Positions 3,113-33,800 of a DNA stretch of 64,000 nt are shown piece by piece. The stretch is from Ylistrum balloti (taxonomy: Eukaryota), in assembly GCF_031769215.1 (NCBI RefSeq), contig NW_026782322.1, positions 1 to 64,000 on the forward strand, in the 5' to 3' direction. A program made the translations under genes and the position numbers. Position 1 is the stretch's first letter. Each line of letters starts with the position of its first letter. The notes under the pieces are model-generated. The model did no database searches and was not told the DNA's origin. It saw only the letters and a list, made by a program, of their open reading frames with translations.

Positions 3113-3680
3113 AACATGGAGATGATGATCCCGTACTTGACTCACTGTGACGTGGAGATGATGACCCCGTACTTGACTCACTGTGACGTGGAGATGATGA
3201 CCCGTGCTTAAGTCACTATGACGTGGAGATGATGGCCCCGAACTTGACTCACTGTGAGGTGGATATGATGACCCCGTACTTGACTCACTGTGACGTGGGG
3301 ATGATGCCCCCATACTTGACTCACTGTGAGGTGGATATGATGACCCCGTATTTGACTCACTGTGACGTGAAGATGATGACCGCGTACTTGACTCACTGTG
3401 ACGTGGAGATGATGACCGCATACTTGACCCATTGTGACGTTGATATGATGACCCGTGCTTGACTCACTGTGATGTGGAGATGATGGCCCCGAACTTGATT
3501 CACTGTGACGTGGAGATGATGACCCCGTACTAGACTCACTTTGACGTGGAGATGATGACCCCGTATTTGACTCACTGTGACGTGGAGATAATGTCCCGTG
3601 CTTGACTCACTGTGAGGTGGATATGATGACCCCGTACTTGACTCACTGTGACGTGGAGATGATGACCCGTGCTTCATTCA
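3113..3680. repeat. 36-bp minisatellite, about 15.5 copies (GAGATGATGACCCCGTACTTGACTCACTGTGACGTG)
   Basis: Direct tandem units with a 35-36 bp period, read from the sequence. Explains ORFs 2924-3421, 3208-3432, 3223-3462 and 3393-3677. Confidence 0.95.
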
Positions 3681-4560: not shown

Positions 4561-7500
4561 ATGATCGTTTCTTCACCCTCCACTAGTCATGTTCAGGTCG
4601 AGGTAAGAAAGACTATGGAATATACCAATGTTGCATTCAATCTTATTTGTTATCGAGCAAACCCAGTCTTTCAAAGATAGAATTTCAGAGAACGCACATT
4701 TTTTCAACAGGGATTTAAGACTATGTGGCAATTTTTGTAATGTTATCATTTTCCAAACAATAAACTAATTAGTTATTTATCACTGACCATAAAGGTTGCC
4801 GTGAAACTGTATGTTGAGAGAGGACTGCTGTTTATCTGGAAAGAATGTTTATGAGTTTATATAGTTATGTCCCCGGTAACATTGTAGATAAACCACACAC
4901 AAGCTGCTAGATAGGTCAAACTCGTTCATAGTCTTGGCGATGAATGCACACAACAACGAATAATGATTGCTGAAATTATAACTTTGGACAACAATACTTA
5001 AAACAAAGAAGCCTTTGGTTTAGAAATCCCGGAACATTTGCTAGAACGGAACGTCCAGAGGAGGTACCGAACATGCTTGTGTATTTGCATGGTACATGTA
5101 GAAGAGGTGCCGAACATATGGAAATATGATGTGCACAATTTGCCTTTGAACAGGCGTACCCATTATCAGAAATCTCCCTTAATTCATTTTCATGAAAGAA
5201 ACGTTTGATTTGAAGATGGTTGCCTTTATCTCTACTACAGGTCAAATCTTGTATCGTTCGGAATATTTCACGTATGCGTGTGAAGTTACAAAAAACTCAA
5301 AACAGCATTCCTTTGGTATTAAGAACTCCTCGTCTGCTACTTTAAAACAAAAATGAAAAAAAAAACTGGTTTAGAGAGTACATTGTTTGCTAAGAGAACA
5401 TTTTCAAACAAAACCCTTCATGTAAAAAGTGTACTGTCTGCCATTCTGTTTATATTGCGGCATAATGACTAGCACATATCTATTTTGTATGTATTGAGTT
5501 TATTACTTTCTCTTGAAAGCTCCATTTTTTTTACATGCAACTGACCGAAAATGAATTCCACAATCATTCTCTCTTTGATAAGTTCATCTACTTTCGAGAT
5601 TTCAGAAGACATATATTAATTTTCCGTAGCGTGGCGGCCATCGAGGTTTATTTCATGGCAGACATTTTGAAGTACCAACATGTAGCTTGTTAGTATGGAC
5701 AGGTGCTTGACAATCAAGTATCCGTAAAACGACTGGGACACTCAGAATGTATTGTGTTTTAATAACTAAGTGCTTTTATCTCATACCAACAAGTGTAATC
5801 AACATTCCAATGTCTGTATGCTATTGGTTAATAATTCGTAGTTTTTTTTTAGAAAACAAAACATTTTGTCCCAACTTGTCTCTAAAGCCCCTTGTTTTCC
5901 TGTCTATTCATTAGTTGCGTTAAGTATTTGTGGCCCGTTCTAAAGTATGCGTAATAAAGTATCCCTGCTTTCAAAACAGAGCCAGACCAAAACTCACACG
6001 TCATTGGTCGATTTCTAGTATATTGGCGACCAATGAGACAAGATCCTTTGTCACATGACTGATTTTTCAGTCCATTGAACCATATAAACAACATCTTTGG
6101 AGCGTTATTTTCATCAATAGACGATCGAGACGCCATGATTAAATGTAATATGTGATACTTGGTATCAAAATAATAAAAAATACTTTATATAATTCAATCC
6201 TCAAGTGCAGCTTAAATGATTACATCCAACATATAATTGTTTTTACATAATCAGTATGAGAGCGTATTATTTATCCAATCCTGTACTTGAAATAAAAGCT
6301 TGTTGATAGTATAACCCGATTCAACTGATGAACAATTTGACATTCACGTGACAGTCAATCAAATTTTATGATTGTCTTTCAACCTGGTTCTAGAATGGAA
6401 TGATGAGAAACACCAGGGATTCATCGTCAATGGTCGTTCAAAATGATACGGGAGGTCACCACTTTGATTTCTTAGTCTGTGCCATCATAATTGCAGCAGA
6501 TTAAAGACGACATCATCTGGAGCCCGGATGTCTCGAGAAAGGCTATTCTAGCCTCCTGGAGGAGCCTAGGTGTAGGACCGGCGATTACCGTAATCTATTT
6601 AGTACCTCATCTAGCATCCTTACTTTATCGTCATTTGGAATTTTTATCACCTGTTAAAACACCATTGGCTGTTGAAATTTAATTAATGTCACAATCAACC
6701 ACAAGGTTCCCATTAAAATTGTGTCACTCGCCCAGATAGAGTTTTTAGTTGATTGCAATTATCACTTACTCTTAATGGTTTTTAAACTTCAAAAACAGGA
6801 ATTTCATTCGATTTATTGTTAGCAGAATAGTTCATTACGAAATTCTATCCTCTTCAAACAACCTTCCTGATCTATCGAGAAATGGAGGGTATCGTCCTTG
6901 AACTGGAATAGAGAATTAAAGACAAAGGTACGAAGCTTTACTTGTGAAAAAATATAAGGATTTTGTGCCAACCCTATTGAAAGTTTGAGTCGTGTAGGAG
7001 AAATTGCATAGAAGAGAAATAGAAAAATATATAAGAGGACGAACAACCTGACACCAACTTTACCTATTTATTATACTGCAACAAAATCATAAACATTATC
7101 TGCTGGTTCTTTTTCATCGTCATCACTTTGTGTATACTTTCCAAATGTGTCATCTTTTCGTGTGTACCTTCTCGATGTGTCATCAGTTCTTGTGTGCCTT
7201 TCAAATGTGCCAATAATTCTTGTGAATCCTTTTCAAATTATCCTCTGTGCCTTCATATACGTTTTTGAGCACAAGATGTTTTTGAAATGCCACATTGCCG
7301 ATTCAAGTAAATCTTCCCTTACCATTTACAAAAAAAATAAATGTTAGAATTTATGTTTCCATCATAATAGTGTCTCTTGTTTTTTTAGGTATCGGCCATG
7401 ATATCACACACTCCACGACAGTCCACGGAGAACTCTTCTATCCTGACTCTCCCTCCAACATATCACTCTCCATTCTCAAAAAGAGAGACGGGCGTTGGGG

Positions 7501-10500
7501 CGACGTCACTCAGTACCCCTGCGACACTACCCTTGTGTAAGTACGAAATGCCCTCTACATGACAACGGAAATTGCAATATAAATTATGAGTACATTTGTA
7601 TAAAATTTCGCTTTTCTGCCATGAACTTTGCGTATAAGTAAGAAGCGGAAACATCTATATCGACATTTGTATTAAATGTCTGTCACAAAGGAAAAGTAAC
7701 AAATTATATCTCAAGGAAAAAATGCGCAATTCCCTTGCAAAATTTTCATACAAGTTCAAACAATACAATGCCTTGTTATACCGTTCTACAAAGCAAACTA
7801 TATTGAAGTTTATACCCGGGCATCTTGGCAGTGCTTTCATCATGTAATATGAACAAAGCGCGAACGCATCGTTTCATCACGTGGAATCCTCTTTGAACGA
7901 AGATGAACATGTTATCTTTGATTCTTAAGAAATATGAGCTCAAACAACTGGCCATGTATTAATCACATATCTCAGTACTGCCCGAAACAAAGTGACTACA
8001 CATTAGAAAAGACAGGTGATTTTTTTTATAATGATGAGCTTCTTGATTATTTCGAAACTATGCGTTCAACTTTCAAACGTGATGATCCAGTTGATAACTT
8101 AAACGTATTTCAAGAAATAAGAAGAGAGTCTGTAAGCTGGGGGAACCTGTCTAGATGGATGTTATTTGAAGTAACATTAAACGAACATGATATAATCCAA
8201 TGGCTGAAAGGCTTCAGATAATCTAGTATCAACATTGCTTCAGGATATAGTACATAAATATATGCCCAATACTTTCTTAAAATAACCGAAAGAATTTCTT
8301 CTCTTAGGTGACTACTTAGACTAAATATCGCCTGGATCTGTATTTAAGCTGCACTAAATATGCACTTGTCCTGTATAAAATATTGACCTAAACATGAACA
8401 AGTATGTGCTAGACCTGTACATTATGGTGACTGTCGTCGATGAGTGTTGTTATCATTCAATTTTGTTTCGCCCCCACCTCCCTTTTACCCTAGTTCTGTC
8501 TTAAGTGTTGACGTTGCATCATGTCTTTGTGTACTGCCGCTATGATCCATCTCCTCTGTTTCAATCTAGATAAGGGCATTATATTTCTGTTATTCTGAAT
8601 GGCGTTACTCTGGCCTTGACATGGCTTTATTGCCTGTATGTAAAAAAAAATACAACATTATGAATATAGGTTCAGTATTCATGCACTTGAGGCTTTATAA
8701 TGAACTGTACAACTCTATACATAAAATCTTGTAGGATTTAGGCACCAAAATGTTTAACTGCCCAGACAGATTGCGTTTATCCTGTTAAGCAGTTATTCGT
8801 GAAGCGAGACATTTTGTAAGGCAGACAAATTTGTAAAGAGATGTCGAGTATAATTCTGGATTAGTGGATATTGCAGCAATTCAGCATCTGTATCATCACA
8901 GCCTGGAACGTAGTAGCACTACTCATGTTTTCAGGACCGGAATATATTTTTAAAATGTTAAACGTTTATATATAATTGTGAGGTATTCTCTGTAAGCACA
9001 GACAATTTGTGTGAACACGAGCAGTATGTAATGAGAGATATTAGGAGTAGTTTAGCGGCGTAAACGATACCATGTAGAAATATCATGCATTTCAACAGCC
9101 GACGTTAATTCCAGTGGATTCCTGTGTAAGAATATCCATTTTCATAAAGTAAGGATGACAAATCATTTCTATCTAGCGCAAACACACAACAGTGGAAGAA
9201 AGATTGTGGAGATAATTTTGTTCGTGAAGAATGCCATGCTACAGAATTTCAACCTATCTTTGACAAAAATGTCATCAACTCAAAGTAATCAGTTTTGCGG
9301 GAAAGCCACCCTTCAGGTTAGCGTGCCTCAATAAAAACATCTACAGGCCAGCAATCTTTAATGATAATCTTTTTCACAAAAGCAAATGCCTACAACCCCA
9401 AATATCCATTAAGTCCAGTTTATTAGAGCTAATTCTAAATGTGAATGGGAAGGTGTTATTCACTTGTGTGGAGTAAATCTCTTCATGTCTGCGACTCTAA
9501 ATAATAACATTTAATGATATAAAAAAATTACAATGATCACTCAAAACTAGCAATCCGAAATAAGAATGTCTTTTTTTTGGTCGCATAAAAAGAGATTTCA
9601 AAGCATCAAAACCTTGAATAAAAATCCTTTACTATCTGCAGACACACATTATAAATTATAATTTAAAAAAATAACTTCGTACCAGCAATTCGATGTTATT
9701 TTCTTAATAGCTGAGAAAATCTAAATAATTATCTCAGCATGTCTAAATCAGAATATCTAAGCTCATTAACTCAACATCTTAACGTCAGCATCTCAAGCGT
9801 TTATTTCTTATCGTTAGCAAATCTACACGATAATATCAAAAAGTCAACAACTTGTAGTAAAGTAGTACGCCTAGTAATCCTATATTAGAACAGTCGCCAT
9901 ACTCCTAGTAATCCTATATTAGAACAGTCGCCATACACCTAGTAATCCTATATTAGAACAGTCGCCATACTCCTAGTAAGTAATACGCCTAGTAATCCTA
10001 TATTAGAACAGTCGCCATACACCTAGTAATCCTATATTAGAACAGTCGCCATACACCTAGTAATCCTATATTAGAACAGTCGCCATACTCCTAGTAAGTA
10101 ATACTCCTAGTAATCCTATATTAGAACAGTCGCCATACTCCTACTAATCCTATATTAGAACAGTCGCCATACTCCTAGTAATCCTATAATACGCCTAGTA
10201 ATCATATATTAGAACAGTCGCCATACTCCTAGTAATCATATATTAGAACAGTCGCCATACTCCTAGTAAGTAATACGCCTAGTAATCCTATATTAGAACA
10301 GTCGCCATACTCCTAGTAATCCTATATTAGAGCAGTCGCCATACTCCTGGTAAGTAATACGCCTAGTAATCATATATTAGAACAGTCGCCATACTCCTAG
10401 TAAGTAATACTCCTAGTAATCCTATATTAGAACAGTCGCCATACTCCTAGTAATCCTATATTAGAGCAGTCGCCATACTCCTAGTAATCCTATATTAGAA

Positions 10501-13500
10501 CAGTCGCCATACTCCTAGTAAGTAATACGCCTAGTAATCATATATTAGAACAGTCGCCATACTCCTAGTAATCATATATTAGAACAGTCGCCATACTCCT
10601 AGTAATCATATATTAGAACAGTCGCCATACTCCTAGTAAGTAATACGCCTAGTAATCCTATATTAGAACAGTCGCCATTCTCCTAGTAAGTAATACGCCT
10701 AGTAATCATATATTAGAACAGTCGCCATACTCCTAGTAATCATATATTAGAACAGTCGCCATACTCCTAGTAATCCTATATTAGAACAGTCGCCATACTC
10801 CTAGTAATCCTATATTAGAACAGTCGCCATACTCCTAGTAAGTAATACTCCTAGTAATCCTATATTAGAACAGTCGCCATACTCCTAGTAAGTAATACTC
10901 CTAGTAATCCTATATTAGAACAGTCGCCATACTCCTAGTAATCCTATATTAGAACAGTCGCCATACTCCTAGTAATAATCCTATATTAGAACAGTAATAC
11001 TCCTAGTAATCCTATATTAGATCAGTATTAGAACAGTCGCCATACTCCTAGTAAGTAATACTCCTAGTAATCCTATATTAGAACAGTCGCCATACTCCTA
11101 GTAATCCTATATTAGAACAGTCGCCATACTCCTAGTAAGTAATACTCCTAAGTAATACTCCTAGTAATCCTATATTAGAACAGTCGCCATACTCCTAGTA
11201 ATCCTATATTAGAACAGTCGCCATACTCCTAGTAATCCTATATTAGAACAGTCGCCATTCTCCTAGTAATCATATATTAGAACAGTCGCCATTCTCCTAG
11301 TAATCCTATATTAGAACAGTCGCCATACTCCTAGTAATCCTATATTAGAACAGTCGCCATACTCCTAGTAATCCTATATTAGAACAGTCGCCATACTCCT
11401 AGTAATCCTATATTAGAACAGTCGCCATTCTCCTAGTAATCCTATATTAGAACAGTCGCCATACTCCTAGTAATCCTATATTAGAACAGTCGCCATACTC
11501 CTAGTAATCCTATATTAGAGCAGTCGCCATACTCCTGGTAAGTAATACGCCTAGTAATCCTATATTAGAACAGTCTCCATACGCCTAGTAATCCTATATT
11601 AGAACAGTCTCCATACTCCTAGTAATCATATATTAGAACAGTCGCCATACTCCAGTAATCCATATATTATATCTAATCCATATATTAGAACATACTCCTA
11701 GTAATCCTATATTAGAACAGTCGCCATACTCCTAGTAATCCTATATTAGAACAGTCGCCATACTCCTAGTAATCCTATATTAGAACAGTCTCCATACCCC
11801 TAGTAAGCAATACGCCTTTTGTAATCCTATATTAGAACAATCGCCATACTCCTGGTAAATTATACGCCTAGTAATCCTATATTAGAACAGTCGCCATTCT
11901 CCTGGTAAATTATACGCCTAGTAATCCTATATTAGAACAGTCTCCATACCCCTAGTAAGCAATACGCCTTTTGTAATCCTATATTAGAACAATCGCCATA
12001 CTCCTAGTAAGTAATACTCCTAGTAATCCTATATTAGAACAGTCTCCATACGCCTAGTAATCCTATATTAGAACAGTCTCCATACCCCTAGTAAGCAATA
12101 CGCCTTGTAATCCTATATTAGAACAGTCGCCATACTCCTAGTAAGTAGTACGCTTTCTGTTGTACTTGTTCAAATTATGAATTTTCTATTTTTTGTTGCA
12201 GGGACAGCCTCTTCATCATCGTAAGCGGCCTGTATGCTATGCTTGTCGTTGTGATGGGTTGTGTGATGCCTATAGCGGATATATTTGCTACAAAACCGAT
12301 GCCGTATTTATTTGAGGTGATTCTTATACTCTTGATAATTGCCAGAAATTTCTCGGTTTGATATTACTATCAACAAAGTGACAAAATGATGAAGAATATG
12401 TAATTTTAAAAAAAAAATGTATGCAGAGTCCTTTGTTAATCAGTTTGTTTTGTTTTGCAGGGGTTTTACATATATCTTTATTCTGTGAGCATAATATTCC
12501 TTGTATACGCCTACGTGTATTTGCTGCAAAACAAGACAGTTCGTCTGCGCAAGAAGGTCAAACGACGGATGAACTCACCGGATTCAAATGGGTCCACTTC
12601 CAGTCGGAAGCGGAAGTACTCATTTGATGTATCCCGCACATACAATACCGGAAGTTTCTATCTAAGATTAGGAGCCGTAGGTACGTTGTTGCATTGTAAA
12701 CATGTGGAGAAAGTAAGATGAGTTTTGAAGAAAATTAATATTTAATGACAAATTTAGTTGATGTTTAACAACATTTTATCAAACTTCAACCCAATGATTA
12801 AAGCTCATTTTCAACATTGTTAGCTTTCGGTGTGTTTGGAGTTTTTTACCATATTTTAGCGAAGTAAGAATTTTAATGTTTTAATTTCAGCTTTTGGTGT
12901 TGGGAGTATGATACAGAGCGGCCTTCACTTTGGGCAGTTCTTTTACTCAGAGTCGTTCTCGTCCTGTAGTGACCCTGTCCACGGGGTCAGGCCTCTCCTA
13001 CAGCTCAGCTTTACATTTATACAACTCTACTTTGTCTTCCTCAACTCTAAGGTAAGTACACGTCTTTCATCTTCATCCAATAATCTGTTGAATAGTTTTT
13101 CGTATACAAGGTCTGTCCAGTTATGACACCTGATATGTAATCTGTCGTTGAAAGACTTCCGTTTTCATACATTCAGTTTCCAATGTTGGCCGTCGTTCTT
13201 CCAAACTCCGCTAATGTTTTCAATCATGAATTTCCTTTCTTTATTGGTATTCGTTTTTCGTTGCAACTAAACCATAATGGGTGGACCCAATAGATGCTTT
13301 ATTCATTAAATGATTTTTAAAGAATTGTCCAGACTATAATATTACACCGCAGAGGATAGTAAGATTGTAAAGACAAGGAAATACACCAGACAGCGTTTAA
13401 CATAGGCTCTGATGGATGAAGTCCTCTATGTCCTCCGGTGAAAGGAAAAAAGTCGATCACGTTAGCCATAACAATGATTTACTGGCGACTTTTCACATTT

Positions 13501-16500
13501 CCTTGGGCATTGTTTGGGAGATCATTATCACCGTCTATCTTTAACAAGTGTCTGGAACAGTTACTACTCGCCAACACTACCAAATAAACAGATGCTTCGA
13601 AAAGCTGACATTTTTTTTACACAGAGATGCTTGTCGTTTTGCTGTCACGAATGAATTTATACATTATGTAATCATGGTATGGAATTACTGTAAAATCATG
13701 ACTTTTCGTGGGTAGTTTATTTTCGTTGAATTCGTCGTGGTTACTCTTAATCCGCGAATAAATGTGGCCGATAAACCAATGAAAATTGACATGGATTTTA
13801 GTACTAGTCGTGAATAATACATATCCATGAAATCAAAATGCTTACGATAACGTATATTTTTGGAAAACCACAAAATTGAGATAAACGAAAATATATGACT
13901 TTACAGTAAGCGATATATTTCATGAATGATGGAAACATTAAATTGGTTACCATCTTATGAACTGTCGTCACTTTTGTCATTAAATAATTACTAATATTAT
14001 TGAATCAGAATATAAAATAGTTTAATCTTTAATATAAGCTTTTACTGAGGAGAGTAGGTGTGCAGTGTTTTTAATTGCTTATCCGGTATTCCTGGTGGGT
14101 GGTCTCCGGCTACAATGAAGAATTCTGGGTTGGAATTCTAATCCGCCTGTATTATCGAAACGTTTAAAATGTGCTACACCAAGAATGATTCCATTTTGAA
14201 ACATTATCAGCTCCGTAAAATTTGTTGAACTCCTTTTGAAAAGATTGTTTTTGATCACCTAAACAGCCCTCACAAGTCACAACACAAACTTGTTAGATAA
14301 TATTTTTGACAATTGTTTACGGAAACAGACACAGTTTGTTGCATAAATGAGTAAAACGACCATCACCTCATCATCGTTACAAGCAGTAATGAGAGGTAAT
14401 CTACCATTGTCATGTAAAAGAACAATAAACGTTATTGAAGTGTTGGTATAATTTACATACTGTGGCGACTTACCATTAACAAAGATCAGAAGAGAGAACT
14501 TTTATTCATATCTTGTACATGGAATGGTGGTCTGTCACGAACCACGTGTCACGGTTGGTCATAGTACTGAGTGGCAAGAAATAGACCAGTATGGCTTCTC
14601 CTGGTCTTATATCACACTCCCACGTAACCAATTACACAACACCCATCTGTCATTTCCGGTAATTTGTAATTTACATAAATGTATATGCAATCTTAACATG
14701 AAACAGATAATGAATATACACAGGCGTATAATTTGGCATGAAAACAAATGCTATTATAAGAGATATAAAGAGATGTACTAGTTACGAGCCCAGACGATAT
14801 AAATTTGTTGTCGCACTAAACATCTGGGAAGCCCGTTAATGTCTGAGATTGGTTAGTGTAGTCGTTACTTATCGTCGTTACTTACCAGTTATCTGACTAA
14901 ACTGATAGGCATTAGTTTAAACTTTTGTTTTATTTTTTAAAAATTCATACATGAAAACGTTGCTGTTGTGTAGAGGGGAGTGGAAAACAAGCTCATGTTT
15001 TCCCCTGTGATATAAAGTTACATTTTCTATAGAGATCAATTAGGTAGCAGAATATGATAATTGTATTCATATCATTATCATGTTAAGGACTGACAAAGGA
15101 ACACATGTTGTCTATCAGACAACCAAACCCAACAATCCTTCTATATATAATAGTTAAGTGAAATAAAAATTACTGAATGGAAACTTTTTCGTAATTTTGA
15201 TTTATTGCATAGTGTAGTCGCACAACCAAACTTTCTGAACACGCGCATTTTTTGGTAGTTTTCATCAATATAGGATGTCAGTTTTCGTTTATCAATTTGT
15301 CTTAATGGACTAGGATTAAACCTTTCGACGTCTGTTTTTGTCTCGATATATGCTTGAAATACTGTTAAATCATTGATTTTCGGGGGGCTTTTATTTTCGT
15401 TGAATTCGTGGTTACTCGTAATCAACAATACATATGTCCACCAAATAAATTGATAAAATTATTTTTAGTACCGGTGGATTCCGAGAGGTTTATCCACGAA
15501 ATAAGATATTAGCGAAAATGTGTATTACTAGAAAACCACGAAACTTCAGCCAAACGAAAATGTATGATTTTGCAGTATCACAACATTCAAAGTGCTGACG
15601 AAAAGGTTTATCTGCATAAACGGACAACACCAGGTTGTATTACGATGTTGCTACATGTATATATAAACACTGCTACGGGTTTGGACGATCTGACTTCCTG
15701 ATCCAGAATACTAACACCTGTATGTTCTCTACCCTAATTCTAGCCATATGAGTGCCATCAACATCAAAGTATATACAAAAAATATGGTCGCCCCGCCCAG
15801 CACGCGTGTACAACGGTACAGCAGGGGTCGGTCGGGACTACCATCGCTGTACTGTTGTATAGGAGACTCGTATCGTGTTATTTAACAATTCATATTTCAT
15901 GTTTATGATTTCTATCCAGCAGGTCAACAGGCCATTAGCAGTAAATTACATAGACTTCATCTCACCCAAACTGAATGTGAAAAATGCTTCCAAATTAATC
16001 ATAATGTTTACACTTGTTTTTTCGAAGACGTAACGATGAATCACACGACCCTATCCTCTAGATAGAACCGGATATCTCAAATTCTTTCAATAGTGTAAAT
16101 AAAAAATATTTTGGTCCGTTTTGCTTTTGAGTGTAACCTTAATATTTTTGTTGTATATTTTCAGATGTGTATACATCGCTACAAGAGCCTGGCCAGGTTC
16201 GGACTCATGCACATGATCGCAACTAACTTATGTGTGTGGGTGGAGAATATTGTCCGGGAAACCCTGCGCGAAATCGAAACCTATAACGTCCGGCACGGGA
16301 ACGTGGTCACGTGGATAGATCCGCACGTGTCTACCAATGATTCAGTATCCATGGGTATGTGTAATGGTCTCTCTAACAGTCCAGTGTATACAAACCGTTT
16401 TATACATGTTCTTAGTGATTATATCACCATTCGCCGATGAATTATTCATTTAACAAATAACACGATGTCAAAGTTCAAAAAATAAAAAAAAAGTGTTAAA

Positions 16501-19500
16501 GAACCATTAACCCGAAACATTTTTTCTTTTGTAGTAGTTTTGAAATAAAGTTGACAAGTAACACGTTTATTCAGGCAAAATACAGTAATAATATCGGCAT
16601 CAGTTAGACTGGCGGTTAGTCATTTATCATACAATGCTGGATAACTCTCGCTCGGATGGTTTTTTGTCGTATGGACCAATAAAATAACAGAAATTCGAGG
16701 ATAAATACCCGAACCTCTCTTGGGGAAAGTAACATTACCAAAATGCAAATATTAGATATAATAAAGATTCCTCCGAGAGAGGTTGATCCGGGTCATTATT
16801 GATCGTGCGTGCTTTTATACGATCCGATGTGGGCACGTGCTGTGTAGTTTGACAGATACAGATTTCCGGCAGCGTATCTTGTGTTTATGACTGATCTGGG
16901 ATATGTATCCTCCAGAAGGATTCTCGTCCGCTCACGGTCAAAAGACAACGTCACGAGATTATCATCACTTTGTGTCTTTAATCCACTAGTGTCAGTTCAC
17001 AGATCTCCCGATATTGCGTTAGTGTGCCGCCAGGGGGTTCTTTTCACGTGCTTGGTACCAGCATGCTTTGCGACGCCGCCGGTATTGTCGCCGTTGTAGA
17101 TAAGCTCGAGTAACGGTGCAGTTTCCATTGTTTTAAAACAATTACAACGAAATTAAATGGAAGTTCCGTATTGGCAAACGAAATAATGGCTCAATACGTC
17201 TAAAATTCAATCAATAGTGACGTCCGTGAACAAACCATCAGAAAGTCAATGTTTTTTTTAATCTTCCAAGTAATGTTTTTTAAGACGAAGAACATCTTTA
17301 TACTACTAGTATTACAGATCATATACGGATCTAAGAGTGGCAGTTAAAATAGACTTGCCACAGTAGTGAGTAAACGACTATATTTAGGACAAACACGATA
17401 AAAATATGTTTATGAACAGCTTCCTCGAGGAAACATAGGTTTATTACGGATTTTTTTATGCAGTTCCTGTTTAAATATCTATCTGTAAAGTTTTTCAGTA
17501 TCCGCTGTCAAACCCGTCAATCGGCCTTATATAGGTTTTAATAGGCATTGCTGACATGTTTTCATGTCCGACCAAATCTTAAAATTATTTGTCAATAAAC
17601 AGTAGATCTTGAAGTAGTTCATTTCGTACTTGAATACGTCACGTAGACAGCCTTCTATGATATGTAATGATATGATAATAATTTCAAGATATTGAACAAA
17701 ACCAAGAGTATTTACAATGTTCTCAAGGTTAACTTGTATCTTATTTAGCATTTCTAAAAAGCAATTCACAAGAATATTAATACCCAATAACTGCGTTTGT
17801 GACTGTGACACAAGTCAGTTTCTGATATTTGTATCGTTGACGTTTTTTTCTGATATATGTATCGTTGATGTTATACAGTACAAAATAGTTCAGTGGCGTC
17901 AGCCGGCATCATCCGATGTAACGGAAACTCATTGATGAAGTCTGTTGTGGAGTCGTCTGGCCCCTATCTCTACCCATGCAGTGTCGAGTACAGTATCATC
18001 TGTGCAGGTAAGTCTGACCCCTACCTGTACCCGTGTAGTGTGGAATACAGTATCATCTGTGCAGGTAAGTCTGACCCCTACCTCTACCCGTGTAGTGTTG
18101 AGTACAGTATCATCTGTACAGGAAAGTCTGGCCCCTACCTGTACCCTGTAGATCACAGTATCATCTGTACAGGTAAGTCTGGCCCCTACCTGTACCCGTG
18201 TAGAGTACAGTATCATCTGTACAGGTAAGCCTGACCCCTACCTGTACCCGTGTAGAGTACAGTATCATCTGTACAGGTAAGTCTGGCCCCTACCTGTACC
18301 CTGTAGAGTACAGTATCATCTGTACAGGTAAGTCTGGCCCCTACCTGTACCCTGTAGAGTACAGTATCATCTGTACAGGTAAGTCTGGCCCCTACCTGTA
18401 CCCTGTAGAGTACAGTATCATCTGTACAGGTAAGTCTGGCCCTTACCTGTACCCTGTAGAGTACAGTATCATCTGTACAGGTAAGTCTGGCCCTTACCTA
18501 TAGAAACGATCTTATTAAGCATTTCCTTACACAAAATTACGGACCATCGTAAGCATTGCCAGTGTTGACAGTTATTTCCATTCATCAATGCTTCTGATAT
18601 CAAATATTTTACTCTCTACTTTGAGCCAAGCAGGTTTTTGTAAGATTTTATCATTGCACAACTCAGTTGCATACAAGCCTTATACGTTGTTTTAAGCTTC
18701 GAATCCATGAATATAGAATGTTTCAAAGCAAAAGAACTGTTTTAAATATTGAAAGTCCAATGCATGATAATTTTACACTCTACCTGCAGGTATTTTGTAC
18801 GTGATGTGGAAGAATATAGGACGATTCCAGATGGGTTACGATGGCAATGACGTACAAGACATTGAATCTAAGGTTAAGGCCCAGAGGATCAACGTCGACT
18901 GTTCCGGATCTAGTCGGGGTCTTTTCATCGGAATATTTGTCTTAGTTGCCACTGTCATAACCATGATAATATTTTTCGTTCTGATTGGCTCGTTGTCATA
19001 TTTGGATACGGCTCTTAAATTGGAACACCTTTCGGAAGTAGTCATATACGTTTTGACGTCGATCGCCGTCATCTTGGCGTTTCACCGAATGCAGGCTTTA
19101 CGTTACTCGATTGAGAAGCAGATAGACCTTGAAGAAAGCCTTCTCTTGGTTGGAGTGATAGGAGAATTTACGTTTGGATTATTTAGTATCATCGCTGCTG
19201 CCATGGACAGTCAAGAATCCAATGGGTTCCTTGTCATATTATCTAGTGTCCTGGGAATGTTTCAGGCCACTCTTCAAACTGTGTTCCTTCTGCACGCGCT
19301 CCGGAAATCCGCGGGAAAACGGGAGCACGAGCGACAGAAACCTGGTCGCGAGTTTGTGACATTCTTGTTAGTGTGTAATATTGCTCTGTGGAGTATTACT
19401 ACGTTTGAGGTTTTGCGGTCTCAAGCTAACCCAATGCAATTGAACTATTATGGTGTTGTGGCTTGGAACATTGTCAATCATGTGTCTATCCCACTGACAA

Positions 19501-19580
19501 TATTTTTCAGGTTTCACTCGACAGTGTGTTTGTCGAACATATGGAAAAATGCTTGGAGGCGACGTTACCCTAGTGGTTAG
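4561..19580 (+). CDS. Otop: Otopetrin-family proton channel (OtopLc-like), multi-exon, about 622 aa if the tentative 5' exons are right
   Basis: Well-supported exons with GT-AG ends and matching phases: 12202-12316 (DSLFIIVSGLYAMLVVVMG), 12461-12680 (GFYIYLYSVSIIFL...GSFYLRLGAV), 12891-13051 (FGVGSMI...FIQLYFVFLNSK), 16165-16354 (ARFGLMHMIATNLCVW), 17879-18007 (GPYLYPCSVEYSIICA), 18790-19580 (KPGREFVTFLLVCNIALW...IFFRFHSTVCL, stop 19578-19580). These are hallmark otopetrin motifs. Tentative, phase-compatible N-terminal exons: 4561-4602, 6497-6569, 7389-7536. Total 1869 nt = 623 codons. Confidence 0.93.
9861..12153. repeat. Intronic minisatellite of about 2.3 kb; 34-bp unit TACTCCTAGTAATCCTATATTAGAACAGTCGCCA interleaved with 50-bp variants
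   Basis: Near-identical tandem units without spacers; the 50-bp form adds TACTCCTAGTAAGTAA. AGTAGTACGC occurs at both ends (9861-9870, 12144-12153). The array ends 48 nt before the exon starting at 12202. Confidence 0.97.
13686..13908. mobile_element. MITE, TIR TACTGTAAAATCAT...ATGACTTTACAGTA (Tc1/mariner-like TA ends), copy 1
   Basis: 13/14 terminal inverted match; related copies at 15360, 39195 and 62031 share the termini, and those at 15360 and 62031 also share subterminal motifs (AAACCAC..AAA..GAAAAT.TATGA). Confidence 0.75.
15360..15577. mobile_element. MITE of the same TACTGT...ACAGTA family, copy 2
   Basis: TACTGTTAAATCAT...ATGATTTTGCAGTA termini; the internal TTTATTTTCGTTGAATTCGT motif is shared with the 13686 copy. 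Confidence 0.72.
17952..18498 (+). repeat. Tandem array derived from the 3' end of an otopetrin exon plus its splice donor: 9 added units of 57,57,51,52,52,51,51,51,51 bp
   Basis: Unit GTAAGTCTGGCCCCTACCTGTACCCTGTAGAGTACAGTATCATCTGTACAG. Junction-following bases at 18008, 18065, 18122 (GAAAGT, not a donor), 18173, 18225, 18277, 18328, 18379, 18430, 18481. Confidence 0.95.
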
Positions 19581-19790
19581 ATTTCAGTATCACAGACGAG
19601 AAAACCCAAATCATACCATTTTGTCACTGCTTGGTGCTACAAATTCATCTTGTCATGCCTATACACCAGTAATGTTCTTCAATTCTCACCTGAATGAAGA
19701 GATTCAATCGTAACAGTGACTAACCATAAGGTCCAACCACGTGACTGCATTGAGGCTTGTTGATATGACGTCATCATAATCTTTATGCAA

Positions 19791-19796
19791 AATAAA
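19791..19796 (+). terminator. Candidate polyadenylation signal (AATAAA) of the otopetrin gene
   Basis: First AATAAA about 210 nt after the stop codon; use not demonstrated. Confidence 0.4.
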
Positions 19797-20296
19797 GCCA
19801 ACTAAAAGAAAATCTAGAAATTCAGGTCGCTAGTATCTATGTTCAACAAAAAGAAAGCTTAGAAGATGGATTTATGTTGTCGATAATCTCGTCGGGCCAA
19901 CATCTTTACAGGATACAGTACTAGAAGGTTTCACGTCGACATTTTAATTCAATGCTATAACATGTTTTCAAAGTTGAACACTTTGAAACAATCAAAAGTT
20001 TAGCAGTCCATGATGCTACAGAAAATTATCGGCCAATATTAGATGTAATCTTTTGTTATCTTCTATTGAATTGTTTTCTATGTATTTGGTTGTGCATCTG
20101 TAGGAAAAAAAAACATTGTCAGCAATGTATACAATTTTGGCAGCATTTTTAAATAGTACATTAGTATTTCTGATAATGGGTCGGTCATATCTTCTCGTAT
20201 ACAGTTGACAATTTGATGGTATTGTTTGCCGACGCAGTGCTAGTGAGGTGGCCTGATGCACTGTACAAGTGAGATTTAATTCTGCACGGACTTCGA

Positions 20297-21486: not shown

Positions 21487-22640
21487 GTTCAAGATTTCAA
21501 GATTTTTATTTCTCTCAGACAACAACAATGTGTGACAAGAGGTCATACATAATGAAACATTTTTAGTACATGACAGGCAGCCATAGTTATAAACATGTTA
21601 TATATTTGTTGATTTTCCGAAAACATACATTGTAAGCAGCTCAAACATTTTAATATCTAGGACAATCAATGCTAACAATTAACGCAGTCGCATTATAAAA
21701 TGTATGACAATCGTTGGATAAACATGCTTACATTCATCAATAACTTTTTATTAAAGACTGTGAACATCCCTTTCATTTTGTATCGGTTAGGATATTTACA
21801 GTAGTATCCCGGGATATACTTCAGTCTTAGCTGTTTTACTTCATCATTATTACACAAAAATATAAAATGAAACTCATCTCCTATACCATTATTACACATG
21901 GGACATACTCGATCAAGATGTTGTATCCCTCTCCATCCACCTAATTCTACCGGTAATTTACCATTTGCTGTTCTGAATTTACAGGTAAATTCTGCATCTT
22001 TTTTATTCAACCGTAATAAATAGTCTTCAATACCAAATTCATTTTTGAAAATACTATATACTTGTCCTCTGGACGATTTTTCCATTTCGTCGAACCAAGA
22101 TTGGACAAACTGGTCCTTCAGTCTCTGAGCAACTTCAGATTTTAAAAAATTGATATGTGGTAAACAAGTTTTCTGAAACATCCATACATGACCTAATCCA
22201 ACACTGTTTAAAATATTTTTGATGCAGTTTATCCATTTGAATTCTATTTGGCCTGTTTCGTTGAGTGAATACATCAATTTATACATGCAACTTGATAATT
22301 TATTCTCATTCAGGATTAGTGATTACCAATATTTAACCATTCTTAATTTAATATCTATAGTAATAGGGTATCTTCCGATTTCTCCGTAGACCATAAAATT
22401 GGTTGTACTTTTCTTCAACCCCAAAATTCTCTTACAAAATTGTAAATGTATCTTTTCAATAAGATGACAGTTCTCATATCCCCATATTTCACTTGATTAT
22501 AATAAAATCGGGGATACCAATGCATCAAATAATTTCAATTTCAAATCAAGCGGTAAATCAATATTTCTTATTTTTCGGTATAAATCGGATATCGAGAGTA
22601 TTGAAGTCAAGATGTTTTTGGTTGAATTTGGCGTTTGAAA
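21487..22640 (-). mobile_element. 5'-truncated, decayed non-LTR retrotransposon (RTE-X-like C-terminal region)
   Basis: Minus strand reads ...KLKLFDALV (frameshift) EIWGYENCHLIEKIHLQFCKRILGLKKSTTNFMVYGEIGRYP...YW* (premature stop), then ORF 21693-22286 with FRTANGKLPVELGGW..RVCPMCNNGIGDEFHFIFLC (post-RT CCHC-type motif). The 3' end has AATAAA followed by a short (A)ATCTTGA repeated tail at about 21487-21510. Clade assignment is from recalled family features. Confidence 0.85.
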
Positions 22641-27684: not shown

Positions 27685-28018
27685 CCCGTCCCCCATCCCA
27701 TCCTCATTCTGTCCTCTCCCATCCCCATCCTGTCCTCTCCCATCCCCCATCCAATCCCCATCCTGTCCTCTCCCATCCCATCCTGTCCTCTCCCATCCCC
27801 ATCCTGTCCTCTCCCATCCCGTCCTGTCCTCTCCCATCTTGTCCTGTCCTCTCCCATCCCCATCCTGTCCTCTCCAATCTCGTACTCTCCTCTCACCCCC
27901 CCCCCTCATCCTGTCCTCTCCCATCCCCATCCTGTCCTCTCCCATCCCCATCCTGTCCTCTTCCATCTCATCCCCCCCTCCCCCCCCTCCCCATCCTGTC
28001 CTCTCCCATCTCGTCCTG
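27685..28018. repeat. C-rich minisatellite (ATCCTGTCCTCTCCCATCCCC)n
   Basis: Imperfect 16-21 bp tandem units; source of ORFs 27612-27896, 27634-28053, 27652-28059 and 27668-28078. Confidence 0.92.
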
Positions 28019-29662
28019 TTTCCTTCATGTTGTGGTTCATATTTACCCCATAGCACCATAACATCATTTTACACCTGATCCAATTCTGGGTTGCGTAGAT
28101 TTCGTTGCATACATGTCTGACAGGTACCGGTATTTGCTAATTTATCATCAGAGTTCCATTCATTTGCATTTTAATAAGACACTTTTCATATCCTCCAATA
28201 TCTGAGCTGAGAGCTTGTAGTTGTTGATGACCTGCTGTAGTCAGATGTTCTTTCTCTCATGTTAGGTTTATAATTAAAAGTGACTTAAAGTTCTTTAGAT
28301 AATGATTGATCTAGTTATGGATTTTATAAGATGAATCATTTTGTTAATTTTTGTTATAATTATAATATTTATAGCTAACATTTGATAACCTGTGTATTAT
28401 CAAAAAGTTCTCCGACATACAGTGGTAAGGAATAAGAATACACCTGCTGGACATGAATTCCTAACCCAACAGTTCTTATCTTATAAACAATGAATTATCT
28501 GAACAGTGGGGGAGGAAATTCGTGTTAATGATCTGTATCAACATCATACATACTGCTTTGTTTAAAGACAAACATACTAAATATATTTCTTCAACATTCA
28601 GTAAAGTTACAGCTGAACTACATCACGTCATACTTGTAAAATATGTGGAAAAACTTGAAATTGCCTTCATAATTTATGTATAGTGCCATATTTGACAAAA
28701 TAGAGATGCTAAATTGTTTATGAAATGTTTATGCAATGAACAAATTTAACTTCAATATAGATGAAAAGTTTAGGAATTATCAGAAAAATCCTGACAGGAT
28801 GAAATATAGGGGGTGTCGACAGGTATAATTTGAACATCAGGGCATCAAATTAGTAAACCTTTGTTTATCATACAGTTTATACATCATGTAAAATTAAAAT
28901 TGGCTGGAATGATCAAACACAACACATTAACAGAACAATTTGGACTGAAATCATATTTTATGCAACTTTAAATGGAACTCAATTTGAACCATGAATTCTT
29001 GTAGGTGATATGTAAGGCATTGAAAAAAAAAAAAAAAAAGAAATTAAAAATAAATAATTTACATCAACATTCATGTCATGATAGTGACACACAAAAGACT
29101 TGCACCACTGTTTAGCTAGCAAACATGCTTATCATCAAGTTGTTATTCAAAGATATGACACATCTGTCTGTTACAAAAGCAACTACTGCTTGACTCAGAC
29201 AGGCTTAATGTTAGTCAAAATTTACAAATGCATTGTAAAAAAAAACTTCTATAAGGATAGAAAATGTAGGTATAAATGAAGACACAATTTGTTAAATGCT
29301 TAATTTATTTCATTTAAACTTTCCTCAGTGAGATTATTTCCATTTATGGTAATATCAAAACAATACAGAAACAAAATAAGTAAAAACATTGGATCATTTT
29401 GGGCCTTGTGACTGAACCCATTTCTGGACTAGACCATTAATAATACCAAATAGTTTTGATTTTACATACAATGTAGTAATGTAAATAATAAAATATCAGT
29501 CATAATTGTCCTGAAACTTTACAAATCCACAACAAATGTCCTAATCAATACAAATGGCACATAAATGTCTACATGTCGAATTTCCATTACACCTATACAG
29601 TATGTAATCTACCTTGTAGACAGACTATAGAGGTGTGGAAAATCTCCTGCATCACTGATCAG

Positions 29663-30636
29663 GGGTGGGAGGTTTCTGTCACAGACTGACACTCTCTGAA
29701 CAGGTGTGGGAGGTCTTATTTCACAGACTGACCGTCTCTACAGATGTGGGAGGTCTCGTGTCACAGACTGACAGTCTCTGTACAGATGTGGGAGGTCTCG
29801 TGTCACAGACTGACAGTCTCTGTACAGGTGTGGAAGATCTCGTGTCACAGACTGACAGTCTCTGTACAAGTGTAGGAGGTCACGCGTCACAGAGTGACAG
29901 TCTCTGTACAGGCGTGGGAGGTCTCGTGTCACAGAGTGACAGTCTCTGTACAGGTGTGGGAGGTCTCCTGTCACAGACTGACAGTCTCTGTACAGGTGTG
30001 GGAGGTCTCGTGTCACAGACTGACAGTCTCTGTACAGGTGTGGGAGGTCTCCTATCACTGAGTGACAGTCTCTGTACAGGTGTTGGAGGTCTTGTGTCAC
30101 AGACTGACAGTCTCTGTGCAGGTGTTGGAGGTCTCGTGTCACAGAATGACAGTCTCCGTACAGGTGTGAGAGGTCTCCTGTCACAGACTGACAGTCTCTG
30201 TACAGGTGTGGGAGGTCTCGTGTCACAGACTGACAGTCTCTGTACAGGTGTGGGAGGTCTCCTTTCACTGAGTGACAGTCTCTGTACAGGTGTTGGAGGT
30301 CTCGTGTCACAGACTGACAGTCTCTGTGCAGGTGTTGGAGGTCTCGTGTCACAGAATGACAAGCTCTGTACAGGTGTGGGAGGTCTCCTATCACTAAGTG
30401 ACAGTCTCTGTACAGGTGTGGGAGGTCTCCTATCACTGAGTGACAGTCTCTGTACAGGTGTGGGAGGTCTCCTGTCACAGAGTGACAGTCTCTGTACAGG
30501 TGTAGGAGGTCTCGTGTAACAGACTGACAGTCTCTGTACAGGTGTGGGAGGTCTTGTGTCACAGACTGACAGTCTCTGTACAGGTGTGGGAGGTCTCGTG
30601 TCACAGACTGACAGTCTCTGTACAGGTGTGGGAGGT
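29663..30636. repeat. 42-bp minisatellite, about 23 copies, in the probable SLC30A9 3' UTR
   Basis: Unit ACAGACTGACAGTCTCTGTACAGGTGTGGGAGGTCTCGTGTC; starts 167 nt downstream of the SLC30A9 stop; explains the 284, 288 and 160 aa ORFs. Confidence 0.96.
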
Positions 30637-30802: not shown

Positions 30803-33800
30803 TCATAAAGACTCCAGATCTACATGGCGAACTTTGGGATGTCTTGCCTGAAAAAGACAAAAAAAAACATTTTCTAAAACGGAGATTCTTATTCTTTAAT
30901 TATATATGTTTAAGGTATATAACACTGTTATACAAATATTCTTCCAAATACAACTTAATATAAAAGAATGAAATTCATTTAAAAAAATCTGAAAGAATCA
31001 AATTGGATGTCTAGTTCAATCTCCAATGGAAATCTATATCATACAATATGTTAGAGTAAAATAGCTTCTTTGACAGACCATCTAACACAAGCAAAGCGTT
31101 TTAAGTGTTTACCTTGATTCTGGTCTCCAGTCCATCTACTCCCTTACCCAGCTGGTTGACAACTTCACCACCATGGTGTAGAAGGAATTCTTCAGCTTCT
31201 TTTTCATTGGATATAAACTGCATTTCCTACAAAACACAACAAAATTTAACTAAATAATAAAGACGTTATTTTAAATAAATCAACAAACAAGAAAAGTCAG
31301 CTTGATTTTATTTATAAAACATGTGATCCCATACAGGGTCTCCACGGAAACTGCAAAATATGGTTAAAAGTTTGTTATCATTGTTTCTTTGGTTGATATG
31401 ACAAAATTTGGAAAAAATTCATTTATGACATATAAGCATTTTTTTTCTTATATTAGATACGCTAACAAGATTCTCTACAGAATAATGTCAAATATGTCCA
31501 AAAACTGGAATTTATAGCAAGCTTATATTTAGTAATAATGAATCCAATGATCAATTGTTATAGATTCAGTGGAAACAAACCTGCAGTAATGATGCCATGT
31601 TCTGCTCCAATAAATATTCTTTGGTGATTTCTCGGCCATTGAAGTCAATCTCGGCTTTCACTCGATCATTTACAACCTTCATATCATGAACTGACCTACA
31701 GTATATATATAAGAGTTTGATTGTTATTATAAACAATACTTTAGTACAGTCAAGGACTAACCAATGTTTTTTACCATATCCCATCTTGATCTATCATCTC
31801 TGCTAGATGTTGTGAGAAATTTCCAATCAGTGATTGTAGATCACAACTGGTTATTTTCCTCCATTTGCGATAACATGTGAAATGTGTATTGAATAAACTG
31901 GTCCAAATAATGTTCTCTCTGAACTTATCTTTGCTGCATTTGTGTAATTATGTTAATTTTCTCGTAATGAGACAAGAAAAATTCACACACTTCCCAGTGC
32001 TACATCTGTCTTGTCCATCTGTCAGGTACCATTAGGTGATATTTAGAGCAAAGTGGAAATATCATATTTAATTGTATACTTTAACGCATAACCAAAAACA
32101 GTTTATGCACTTTTGCCACAATAATGTACGAGAAATAAAATCTGTTACACACATCAGGTAAAAGTTTGAGAATAATTTACTTCAGTCTTCGACTGATATT
32201 CTGTAACATCTCGTTATAGTCTGTTTTTGCCTCGAATGAGATTATGTTGCAGAATGTCAGCCCTCAACAGTAATAAAATGATTTCAAACACATACAGGTA
32301 ACAGATTCTTTTGATCAGGAATGCTTGATATCTATATCTAGCGGTAAAATTAAAAGTATCATCAATTGCAATACATGTCCTGCGATATAAACCCACCCTC
32401 TAAATTCAAGCTAGAATTTCTGTGTTGAGCACTGGGCTCTATTGTAGGATAAATGTCGTATGTTTACACAATGTACATACAGCTTCTCCCAGAATTTCTG
32501 TGTTGAGCACTGGGCTCTATTGTAGGATAAATGTGTTATGTTTACACACTGTACATACAGCTTCTCCCAGAATTTCTGTGTTGAGCACTGGGCTCTATTG
32601 TAGGATAAATGTCGTATGTTTACACAATGTACATACAGCTTCTCCCAGAATTTCTGTGTTGAGCACTGGGCTCTATCGTAGGATAAATGTCGTATGTTTA
32701 CACAATGTACATACAGCTTCTCCCAGAATTTCTGTATTGAGCACTGGGCTCTATTGTAGGATAAATGCGTTATGTTTACACACTGTACATACAGCTTCTC
32801 CCAGAATTTCTGTATTGAGCACTGGGCTCTATTGTAGGATAAATGTCGTATGTTTACACAATGTACATACAGCTTCTCCCAGAATTTCTGTATTGAGCAC
32901 TGGGCTCTATTGTAGGATAAATGCGTTATGTTTACACACTGTACATACAGCTTCTCCCAGAATTTCTGTATTGAGCACTGGGCTCTATTGTAGGATAAAT
33001 GTCGTATGTTTACACAATGTACATACAGCTTCTCCCAGAATTTCTGTGTTGAGCACTGGGCTCTATTGTAGGATAAATGTGTTATGTTTACATACTGTAC
33101 ATACAGATTCTCCCAGAATTTCTGTGTTGAGCACTGGGCTCTATTGTAGGATAAATGTGTTATGTTTACACACTGTACATACAGATTCTCCCAGAATTTC
33201 TGTGTTGAGCACTGGGCTCTATTGTAGGATAAATGTGTTATGTTTACACAATGTACATACAGCTTCTCCCAGAATTTCTGTATTGAGCACTGGGCTCTAT
33301 TGTAGGATAAATGTCGTATGTTTACACAATGTACATACAGCTTCTCCCAGATTTTCTGTATTGAGCACTGGGCTCTATTGTAGGATAAATGCGTTATGTT
33401 TACACAAAGTACATACAGCTTCTCCCAGAATTTCTGTATTGAGCACTGGGCTCTATTGTAGGATAAATGCGTTATGTTTACACAAAGTACATACAGCTTC
33501 TCCCAGACTTTCTGTATTGAGCACTGGGCTCTATTGTAGGATAAATGCGTTATGTTTACACACTGTACATACAGATTCTCCCATAGTTAAAGATAATTCA
33601 CTGAAGCATCTTGGTGTGGACTTACTTACCTGACGATAGGATCACTCTCCATTGTGTTTAGAATGGCCTCTTTTACGTTGGGTGGAGCTGACCTACAAAG
33701 AATCCAACAACAACACAAATAATGTCAGCCATTCATCAATAACTTGTCCTTCACTAAATTACTGTGTAGTTGGTAATATTTGTGAGGAATTTTATTTTCA

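Follow-up and report, generated by a model that had tools for sequence, protein, structure and literature searches.

A tandem ladder of splice donors in an otopetrin gene of the scallop Ylistrum balloti: probably a tolerated junction-spanning minisatellite

Which splice donor does a gene use when the end of an exon and the beginning of the next intron have been copied many times over, and how does such a ladder of donors arise? The question is raised by an otopetrin gene of the scallop Ylistrum balloti, located in a stretch of 64,000 nucleotides (nt) of contig JAUZWB010000380.1 in assembly GCA_031769215.1, which is referred to below as the window and to which all coordinates refer unless otherwise stated. 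The end of an exon that encodes half of transmembrane helix 6 (TM6) of the channel, together with the donor that follows it, forms the first unit of a tandem array. We consider it probable that the array is a lineage-specific, junction-spanning minisatellite in an old phase-1 intron, that the first donor is the one used, and that the copied donors (hereafter decoys) are silent or used at a low level, the array being a tolerated by-product.

The array is located at 17955-18499 on the + strand and consists of 10 units of 51-57 base pairs (bp) followed by a stub of 15 nt. Tandem Repeats Finder, run on the window, reports it as 17981-18499, with a period of 51, 9.9 copies, 93% matches and a score of 815. 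The first repeat unit comprises the last 53 nt of the otopetrin exon (17955-18007) plus GTAA. The units were cut in the phase GTAAGT...CAG, i.e., at CAG/G junctions (the slash marks the splice boundary), of which there are 10, at 18008, 18065, 18122, 18173, 18225, 18277, 18328, 18379, 18430 and 18481 (Table 1). GT is present at nine of the 10 junctions and GA at one; the sequence CAG/GTAAGT is found at every junction but two, namely 18122 (GAAAGT, without GT) and 18225 (GTAAGC). The decoys with GT are eight in number, and seven of them are exact copies of the authentic 9-mer CAG/GTAAGT. They sit 57-473 nt 3' of the authentic donor, each with about 50 nt of near-identical exonic context. The whole intron that holds the array is 783 nt long. 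A first reading of this DNA by a model (the original prediction) had listed nine added CAG/G junctions, eight of them with GT, and cutting the array at the junctions reproduces these counts.

The coding segment that was duplicated, PYLYPCSVEYSIICA, makes up the N-terminal half of TM6, with a conserved proline and the proton-carrying glutamate. Its motif Y-P-C-S-V-E is equivalent to Tyr245-Pro246...Glu250 in TM6 of mouse OTOP2 (PMC11343839). Matches to the Pfam family PF03189 were obtained for four exons, and profile position 187 meets position 189 across the intron when 18007 is joined to 18790. Placement by PF03189 and by the mouse equivalence agrees with the original prediction, in which the array was said to copy the otopetrin TM6 core. 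Spliced at the first donor, the gene gives a PF03189 match with the TM6 Pro-x3-Glu core of the otopetrins. The RefSeq protein XP_060075817.1 ("proton channel OtopLc-like", 586 amino acids, aa) matches the window exons at 100% and reads ...EYSIICAG/ILYVMWKN..., i.e., the first donor is used and the join is the one standard in the family. The gene is otherwise intact, and its last exon shows 96-97% aa identity to scallop orthologues. The canonical gene product is a normal OtopLc-like channel, and otopetrin biology is unchanged. With regard to the annotation, the RefSeq model of 586 aa compares with 811 aa in three orthologues, its 5' exons being missing; the first matched exon is located at 7388-7537, and the start of the contig close upstream is possibly the cause.

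We compared the locus to the orthologues of Pecten maximus (XP_033743526.1, locus L005), Mizuhopecten yessoensis (XP_021364106.1, locus L007) and Argopecten irradians (XP_069130948.1, locus L008). The same phase-1 intron follows ...IC(F)AG in all three, with a length of 1724 nt, 283 nt and 374 nt, respectively, and the segment is present once, the junction being free of tandem repeats. The intron is also found in L002, a more distant relative. Because three other genera have this intron without the array, the intron is ancestral, and the array was acquired in the Ylistrum lineage. When the array is subtracted, the Ylistrum intron measures about 290 nt, near the 283 nt of M. yessoensis. The TM6 motif was identified in 154 of 269 collected otopetrins, including a spliced transcript fragment from a relative (P0155), and it is a single copy with constant spacing to ILYVMW in 154/154. 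A search for array-carrying or extended open reading frames (ORFs) elsewhere, with the read-through ORF 17893-18225 as the query, recovered only two weak matches, both to other paralogues without the array. In a relative matched by the last exon (L001, 89% aa identity), the 144 bp of upstream sequence stop short of the junction. The locus is a head-to-tail array with units in the range of about 10-160 bp, the first unit contains a real exon-intron boundary, and the units derive from the gene's own boundary, which is single-copy in the relatives, as in other junction-spanning minisatellites.

The units also record how the array was built. They are 81-91% identical to the exon ends of P. maximus, M. 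yessoensis and A. irradians, and unit U2 is 91% identical to the exon end of M. yessoensis vs 88% to its own exon. Units U4-U10 have a 5-6 nt deletion in common, and the change GTGCAG>GTACAG is common to U3 and U4-U10. The mutual identity of U4-U10 is 94-100%, except for U4 vs U6 (90%), and U7-U9 are identical. These comparisons show that a segment of 57 nt (53 exon nt plus GTAA) was tandemly duplicated in the Ylistrum lineage, and that a deleted derivative of 51-52 nt was later amplified and homogenised on the 3' side of the array. The border units are divergent and the interior is homogenised, as in the exon-intron boundary repeats of amphioxus called mirages. Derivation from the exon end and donor, as originally proposed, is supported by the unit anatomy and the single-copy orthologues. 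The exon sequence TACCTGTAC is the reverse complement of the donor region GT(G/A)CAGGTA, and the inverted repeat TACCTGTAC / GTGCAGGTA, by pairing the exon with the donor, would be a plausible trigger of the replication slippage that started the array. An origin by slippage, as also suggested in the original prediction, is plausible; the 9-nt seed named there finds no confirmation in the orthologous introns, which have diverged so far that they share only GTANGTC with the start of the Ylistrum intron.

We infer that the first donor is used because only the first-donor model gives a protein that conforms to the family, because the gene is otherwise intact and conserved, because every decoy interrupts TM6 with an insertion or gives a product that is truncated or bears a premature termination codon, and because there are experimental precedents (F7, LMNB2, PDGF and the amphioxus mirages). 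The pre-mRNA would be spliced from 18008 to the acceptor at 18789/18790, and the whole array would be removed as part of the intron. Both exon definition and the "most upstream site" rule give preference to the donor that comes first after the acceptor of the exon, and the eight GT decoys would for this reason be silent or little used. The consequences for the reading frame, recomputed here, are as the original prediction had them. Donor 18065 would add 57 nt (19 aa) and donor 18173 would add 165 nt (55 aa), both in frame; use of 18225 shifts the frame and leads to a stop 58 nt into the last exon, and donors 18277-18481 would all take in the in-frame TAA at 18226-18228. Units U2 to U4 keep an ORF, which is open through 18225, and the in-frame donor after U3 (18122) has decayed to GA. 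The products of any decoy would presumably be defective, whether by an insertion of 19 or 55 aa mid-TM6 or by truncation, and the array would have no adaptive role, being tolerated as a by-product of the very frequent formation of minisatellites in this genome.

Tandem repeats cover 17.5% of positions 1-21000 of the window, as compared to 14.3%, 7.9% and 1.0% of the loci from M. yessoensis, P. maximus and A. irradians, respectively, and the window holds many other arrays of 30-80 bp units. The M. yessoensis orthologue carries a junction array of its own, which is independent and located at another donor (L007:36790-37187, NEDP02004526.1), with a 56-bp unit repeated 7.1 times. This unit consists of the last 37 nt of the exon ending in ...LYFVFLNSK plus 19 nt of the intron, and the array presents seven AAG/GTA-type sites, at 36826, 36882, 36938, 36994, 37050, 37105 and 37161. 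The RefSeq isoforms X1 and X2 of M. yessoensis both use the first donor of this array. No array of this type is present at the same exon in Y. balloti (window position 13054).

Several points weigh against the silence of the decoys. This silence is inferred, and homology, rather than transcripts, may be the basis of the RefSeq model. The authentic, perfect-consensus CAG/GTAAGT recurs in seven decoys, each decoy has about 50 nt of the exonic context of the authentic site, and U2 to U4 have remained an ORF. The only pseudo-sites that competed in F7 minigenes were those of perfect consensus, with a use of about 70-90% (PMC1557585). By predicted accessibility, the authentic donor is not clearly set apart from the decoys: in nascent-RNA folds, opening the donor 9-mer costs 4.1 kcal/mol at the authentic site vs 3.8-6.2 kcal/mol at the decoys, with 6.2 kcal/mol at the nearest competitor, 18065. 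Finally, a burst of synonymous changes in the exon copy, described below, hints that the array is perhaps not entirely neutral. Some use of 18065 or later donors is possible.

The reading that survives best after the preferred one, although we consider it unlikely, is that the decoys are appreciably used, so that TM6-extended proteins (+19/+55 aa) and truncated transcripts or targets of nonsense-mediated decay are made, and that the length or make-up of the array, which would vary between individuals, sets the amount of productive channel mRNA. It draws on the perfect decoys with their shared upstream context, on the frame that is open through 18225, on the unit make-up that seems to differ between individuals, on the synonymous changes clustered in the exon copy, which could answer a splicing cost, and on precedent: the perfect-consensus pseudo-sites competed in F7 minigenes, and in IFI6 and CBS the two pseudo-sites adjoining the authentic one are constitutively used (PMC1557585). 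Yet the lone RefSeq model takes the first donor, and no extended isoform is present in the 90% identity cluster of XP_060075817.1, which contains five proteins, one of them from Y. balloti. A second copy of the motif occurs in 0/154 homologues, an insertion would land inside a transmembrane helix beside the proton-carrying glutamate, the in-frame donor after U3 is lost, and arrays of this type occur often and have the look of by-products. The same three observations on the model, the cluster and the homologues speak against the TM6-duplicated isoforms (+19 aa) of the original prediction, and the idea of array length as a genetic dial on channel output is speculation.

Somewhat less probable still is a compensatory history, in which the ladder of decoys had a cost in splicing or recombination and the exon copy answered with five synonymous changes, which would mark it off from the decoys and open a hairpin that sequesters the donor; in a variant, residual decoy use would act as a regulator through unproductive splicing that depends on array length. 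The changes are located at 17964-17985 (+), where the authentic exon copy reads TAT CTC TAC CCA TGC AGT GTC; the intronic units and the three other genera keep the ancestral TAC CTG TAC CCG TGT AGT GTG. All five are specific to Ylistrum. Ylistrum-specific changes number 24 per 780 nt in the other coding sequence, so that about 2 would be expected in 53 nt; the observed number is 5 (Poisson P about 0.05, post hoc). Only 2-4 changes are seen per unit lineage in 57 unconstrained sites. The cluster in the exon copy appears to be a real but weakly supported oddity, for which three causes are possible: selection that acted on the exon copy once the duplication had occurred, an array border that is mutagenic, or conversion by a paralogue. 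If the compensatory history were true, the gene would offer a rare example in which synonymous changes that compensate for a junction duplication can be seen. The synonymous states of U2 and U3 look ancestral because the exon copy has changed, and not because these units are constrained. Coding constraint on U2 and U3 was considered and set aside, since the approximately five changes (three synonymous, two not) are too few to tell.

Two of the five changes, TAC>TAT and CTG>CTC, break a 9-bp stem between exon and donor that is kept in the three other genera. The cost of opening the donor 9-mer in the nascent-RNA folds is 6.8 kcal/mol in P. maximus, 13.0 kcal/mol in M. yessoensis and 11.9 kcal/mol in A. 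irradians, i.e., above the value for the authentic donor in Y. balloti. Equilibrium local folding gives low accessibility at all donors, with an outcome that varies with the folding window. Masking of the decoys by RNA structure was rejected as the cause of the donor choice, as the authentic donor is among the more open ones but not uniquely so and the folds depend on the window used.

We also compared the reference to four non-reference DNA runs from two studies, the contigs of which were placed on 15900-19900. The searches for runs that contain the gene returned DNA runs only, and the placed contigs were genomic and showed no splice joints. The runs represent other individuals, because they differ from the reference by about 0.4-0.7% in the single-copy flank. 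In each of the four runs, a long contig extends from the exon to 18088, through the first decoy unit and into the second, and another contig begins at 18464 and continues into the unique part of the intron. Short, unit-sized contigs with raised depth were recovered between 18088 and 18464. This is the pattern that a real repeat gives in de Bruijn assembly; the array is real, and its copy number may differ from that of the reference. One unit variant (18200-18249, with GTAAGCCTGAC) is single in the reference, where a 50-nt contig matching it exactly is unique, all of its 31-mers holding the C of GTAAGC; its k-mer depth in the four runs is 5.9-7.9x that of single-copy sequence. The excess may reflect an array make-up or length that differs between individuals, a collapse in the reference or a second locus. 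A literature search found no Y. balloti genome paper that describes how the assembly was made. That the array or its length is an assembly artefact is very improbable: although the short-read contigs break inside the array and the depth of this variant suggests that the copy number of the reference may be wrong or collapsed, both borders were reproduced in four non-reference runs from two studies, with unit-sized contigs of raised depth between them.

Two further suggestions of the original prediction are hardly credible. The first is that the AG/GT junctions serve as ratchet points for recursive splicing, by which the intron would be excised in steps. This mode of splicing is known from introns of great length in Drosophila and vertebrates. 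The scallop junctions do have the juxtaposed motif CAG/GTAAGT, but the intron is only 783 nt long, and a strong 3' site fused to the 5' site is lacking: the tracts upstream of the pseudo-acceptors have a T fraction of 0.30 and a pyrimidine fraction of 0.50-0.55, as compared to 0.40-0.65 and 0.55-0.75, respectively, for the seven real acceptors of the gene. Nor are the sites conserved, being absent from the three other genera with the same intron, and nothing requires a stepwise route, the end product of which would equal that of direct splicing. The second is that the array represents an intermediate on the way to intron gain through tandem AGGT duplication (the model of Rogers, or the mirage model of Ebner et al.). 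The array is the very substrate that the model proposes (PMC3087553), but the idea is just as improbable. The host intron is older than the array, with an unchanged position and phase in P. maximus, M. yessoensis, A. irradians and L002, i.e., it is a phase-1 intron in four scallop genera and L002 rather than one absent from the relatives; moreover, the annotated model takes up none of the units as an exon, and most units are out of frame or contain a stop.

The coordinates of the array and of the otopetrin exons are collected in Table 1. Elsewhere in the window, of which about a tenth is tandem repeat, large minisatellites are located at 3117-3668 (36 bp x15), 27696-28019 (21 bp x16), 29660-30636 (42 bp x23) and 32413-33583 (78 bp x15). 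A compound minisatellite of 2.3 kb with periods of 34, 50 and 84 bp (9866-12153) accounts for most of the otopetrin intron between the exons 7388-7537 and 12203-12316. On the opposite strand, an ORF of 197 aa (21693-22286, -), whose tail is rich in Cys and His (...RVCPMCNNGIGDEFHFIFLCNN...), resembles the remnant of a retroelement and has no Pfam match.

Table 1. Positions in the window of the otopetrin exons, the array units and the splice sites.
Feature	Position	Strand	Remarks
Further otopetrin exons	7388-7537; 12203-12316; 12461-12682; 12890-13054; from 16162		
Otopetrin exon with phase-1 3' end, encoding ...RCNGNSLMKSVVESSGPYLYPCSVEYSIICA+G, N-terminal half of TM6	17878-18007	+	Pfam PF03189 positions 154-187
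Exon end (first unit region)	17952-18007	+	
Authentic 5' splice site CAG/GTAAGT, most upstream of the ladder	18008-18013	+	Used by the RefSeq model
Units U2 and U3 (old, 57 nt each), with full coding-like sequence and ancestral synonymous states	18008-18121	+	
Array unit U2, 57 nt	18008-18064	+	
Array unit U3, 57 nt	18065-18121	+	
Seven younger units of 51-52 nt, U4-U10	18122-18480	+	Shared 5-6 nt deletion and GTGCAG>GTACAG
Array unit U4, 51 nt	18122-18172	+	
Array units of 52 nt (two)	18173-18224; 18225-18276	+	
Array units of 51 nt (four)	18277-18327; 18328-18378; 18379-18429; 18430-18480	+	
Last decoy donor and 15-nt partial unit GTCTGGCCCTTACCT, end of the array	18481-18499	+	
Terminal GTAAGTCTGGCCCTTACCT after the last full unit	up to 18499	+	
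Unique rest of the intron, 290 nt, ending in the acceptor CTGCAG/	18500-18789	+	
Last otopetrin coding exon, GILYVMWKN... to stop	18790-19580	+	PF03189 positions 189-434, E=8.7e-77; 100% to XP_060075817.1

A tolerated junction-spanning minisatellite with use of the first donor remains the reading that we prefer, and the locus is of interest beyond the gene itself. It is a natural experiment, since, with donors so nearly identical, only their position, their distance from the upstream acceptor or RNA structure can govern the choice among them. The junction arrays of scallops, which are found in the otopetrin gene of two genera, could be used to test the "most upstream site" scanning rule outside mammals. 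They are also a warning for annotation, as gene predictors and short-read assemblies can err at such junctions.

The original prediction treated the structure as special. It is, however, a further example of a described repeat class and not a new type (PMC1557585, PMC3087553). The ratchet points of long introns in Drosophila and vertebrates have the AG/GTAAGT juxtaposition in common with the scallop junctions; the scallop sites differ in that they are located in a short intron, have a weak pyrimidine tract, are not conserved and were born by duplication of a donor rather than as a composite of 3' and 5' sites.

Experimental precedents come from human genes. In intron 7 of F7 (IVS7), a 37-bp minisatellite has a first unit that spans the boundary between exon 7 and the intron (Borensztajn et al., 2006; PMC1557585). 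As in the scallop, the repeats of this variable array are arranged head-to-tail, the authentic donor is in the first unit and a single acceptor serves all donors. The donor is repeated identically 5-9 times in the intron, with a polymorphic length, and the identical pseudo-donors are functional, yet only the most upstream site is used (PMC1557585). The F7 unit differs in that it includes only 4 exonic nt and a weak donor, TGG/gtgggt, whereas the scallop unit combines a perfect-consensus donor with 53 exonic nt that code for the core of a transmembrane helix; moreover, splicing of F7 was shown with minigenes, whereas the scallop array is known here from its sequence. LMNB2 and PDGF behave like F7, whereas in IFI6 and CBS the next two sites are used as well (PMC1557585). 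In intron 2 of IFI6 (6-16) and intron 13 of CBS, the donor is repeated many times by a junction-spanning minisatellite, as in the scallop, and constitutive use of the two nearest pseudo-sites leads to small in-frame insertions (PMC1557585); the corresponding insertion in the scallop, from donor 18065 (+19 aa), would hit a transmembrane helix.

The amphioxus mirages (PMC3087553; Ebner et al., 2010, who cite Canestro et al., 2002) are exon-intron boundary repeats known from Adh3 and from two globin genes, BflGb6 and BflGb9. Their units, of 10-160 bp, have a sizeable exonic part, the inner units evolve in concert and the border units are divergent, all of which is also seen in the scallop. The mirages are unstable in length and occur in several genes of one genome. 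Amphioxus belongs to a different phylum, and its mirages affect both donor and acceptor boundaries, whereas the scallop array is located at a donor and in an ion-channel gene. Regular splicing in amphioxus is reported to be undisturbed by the mirages, as determined by reverse transcription PCR (PMC3087553).

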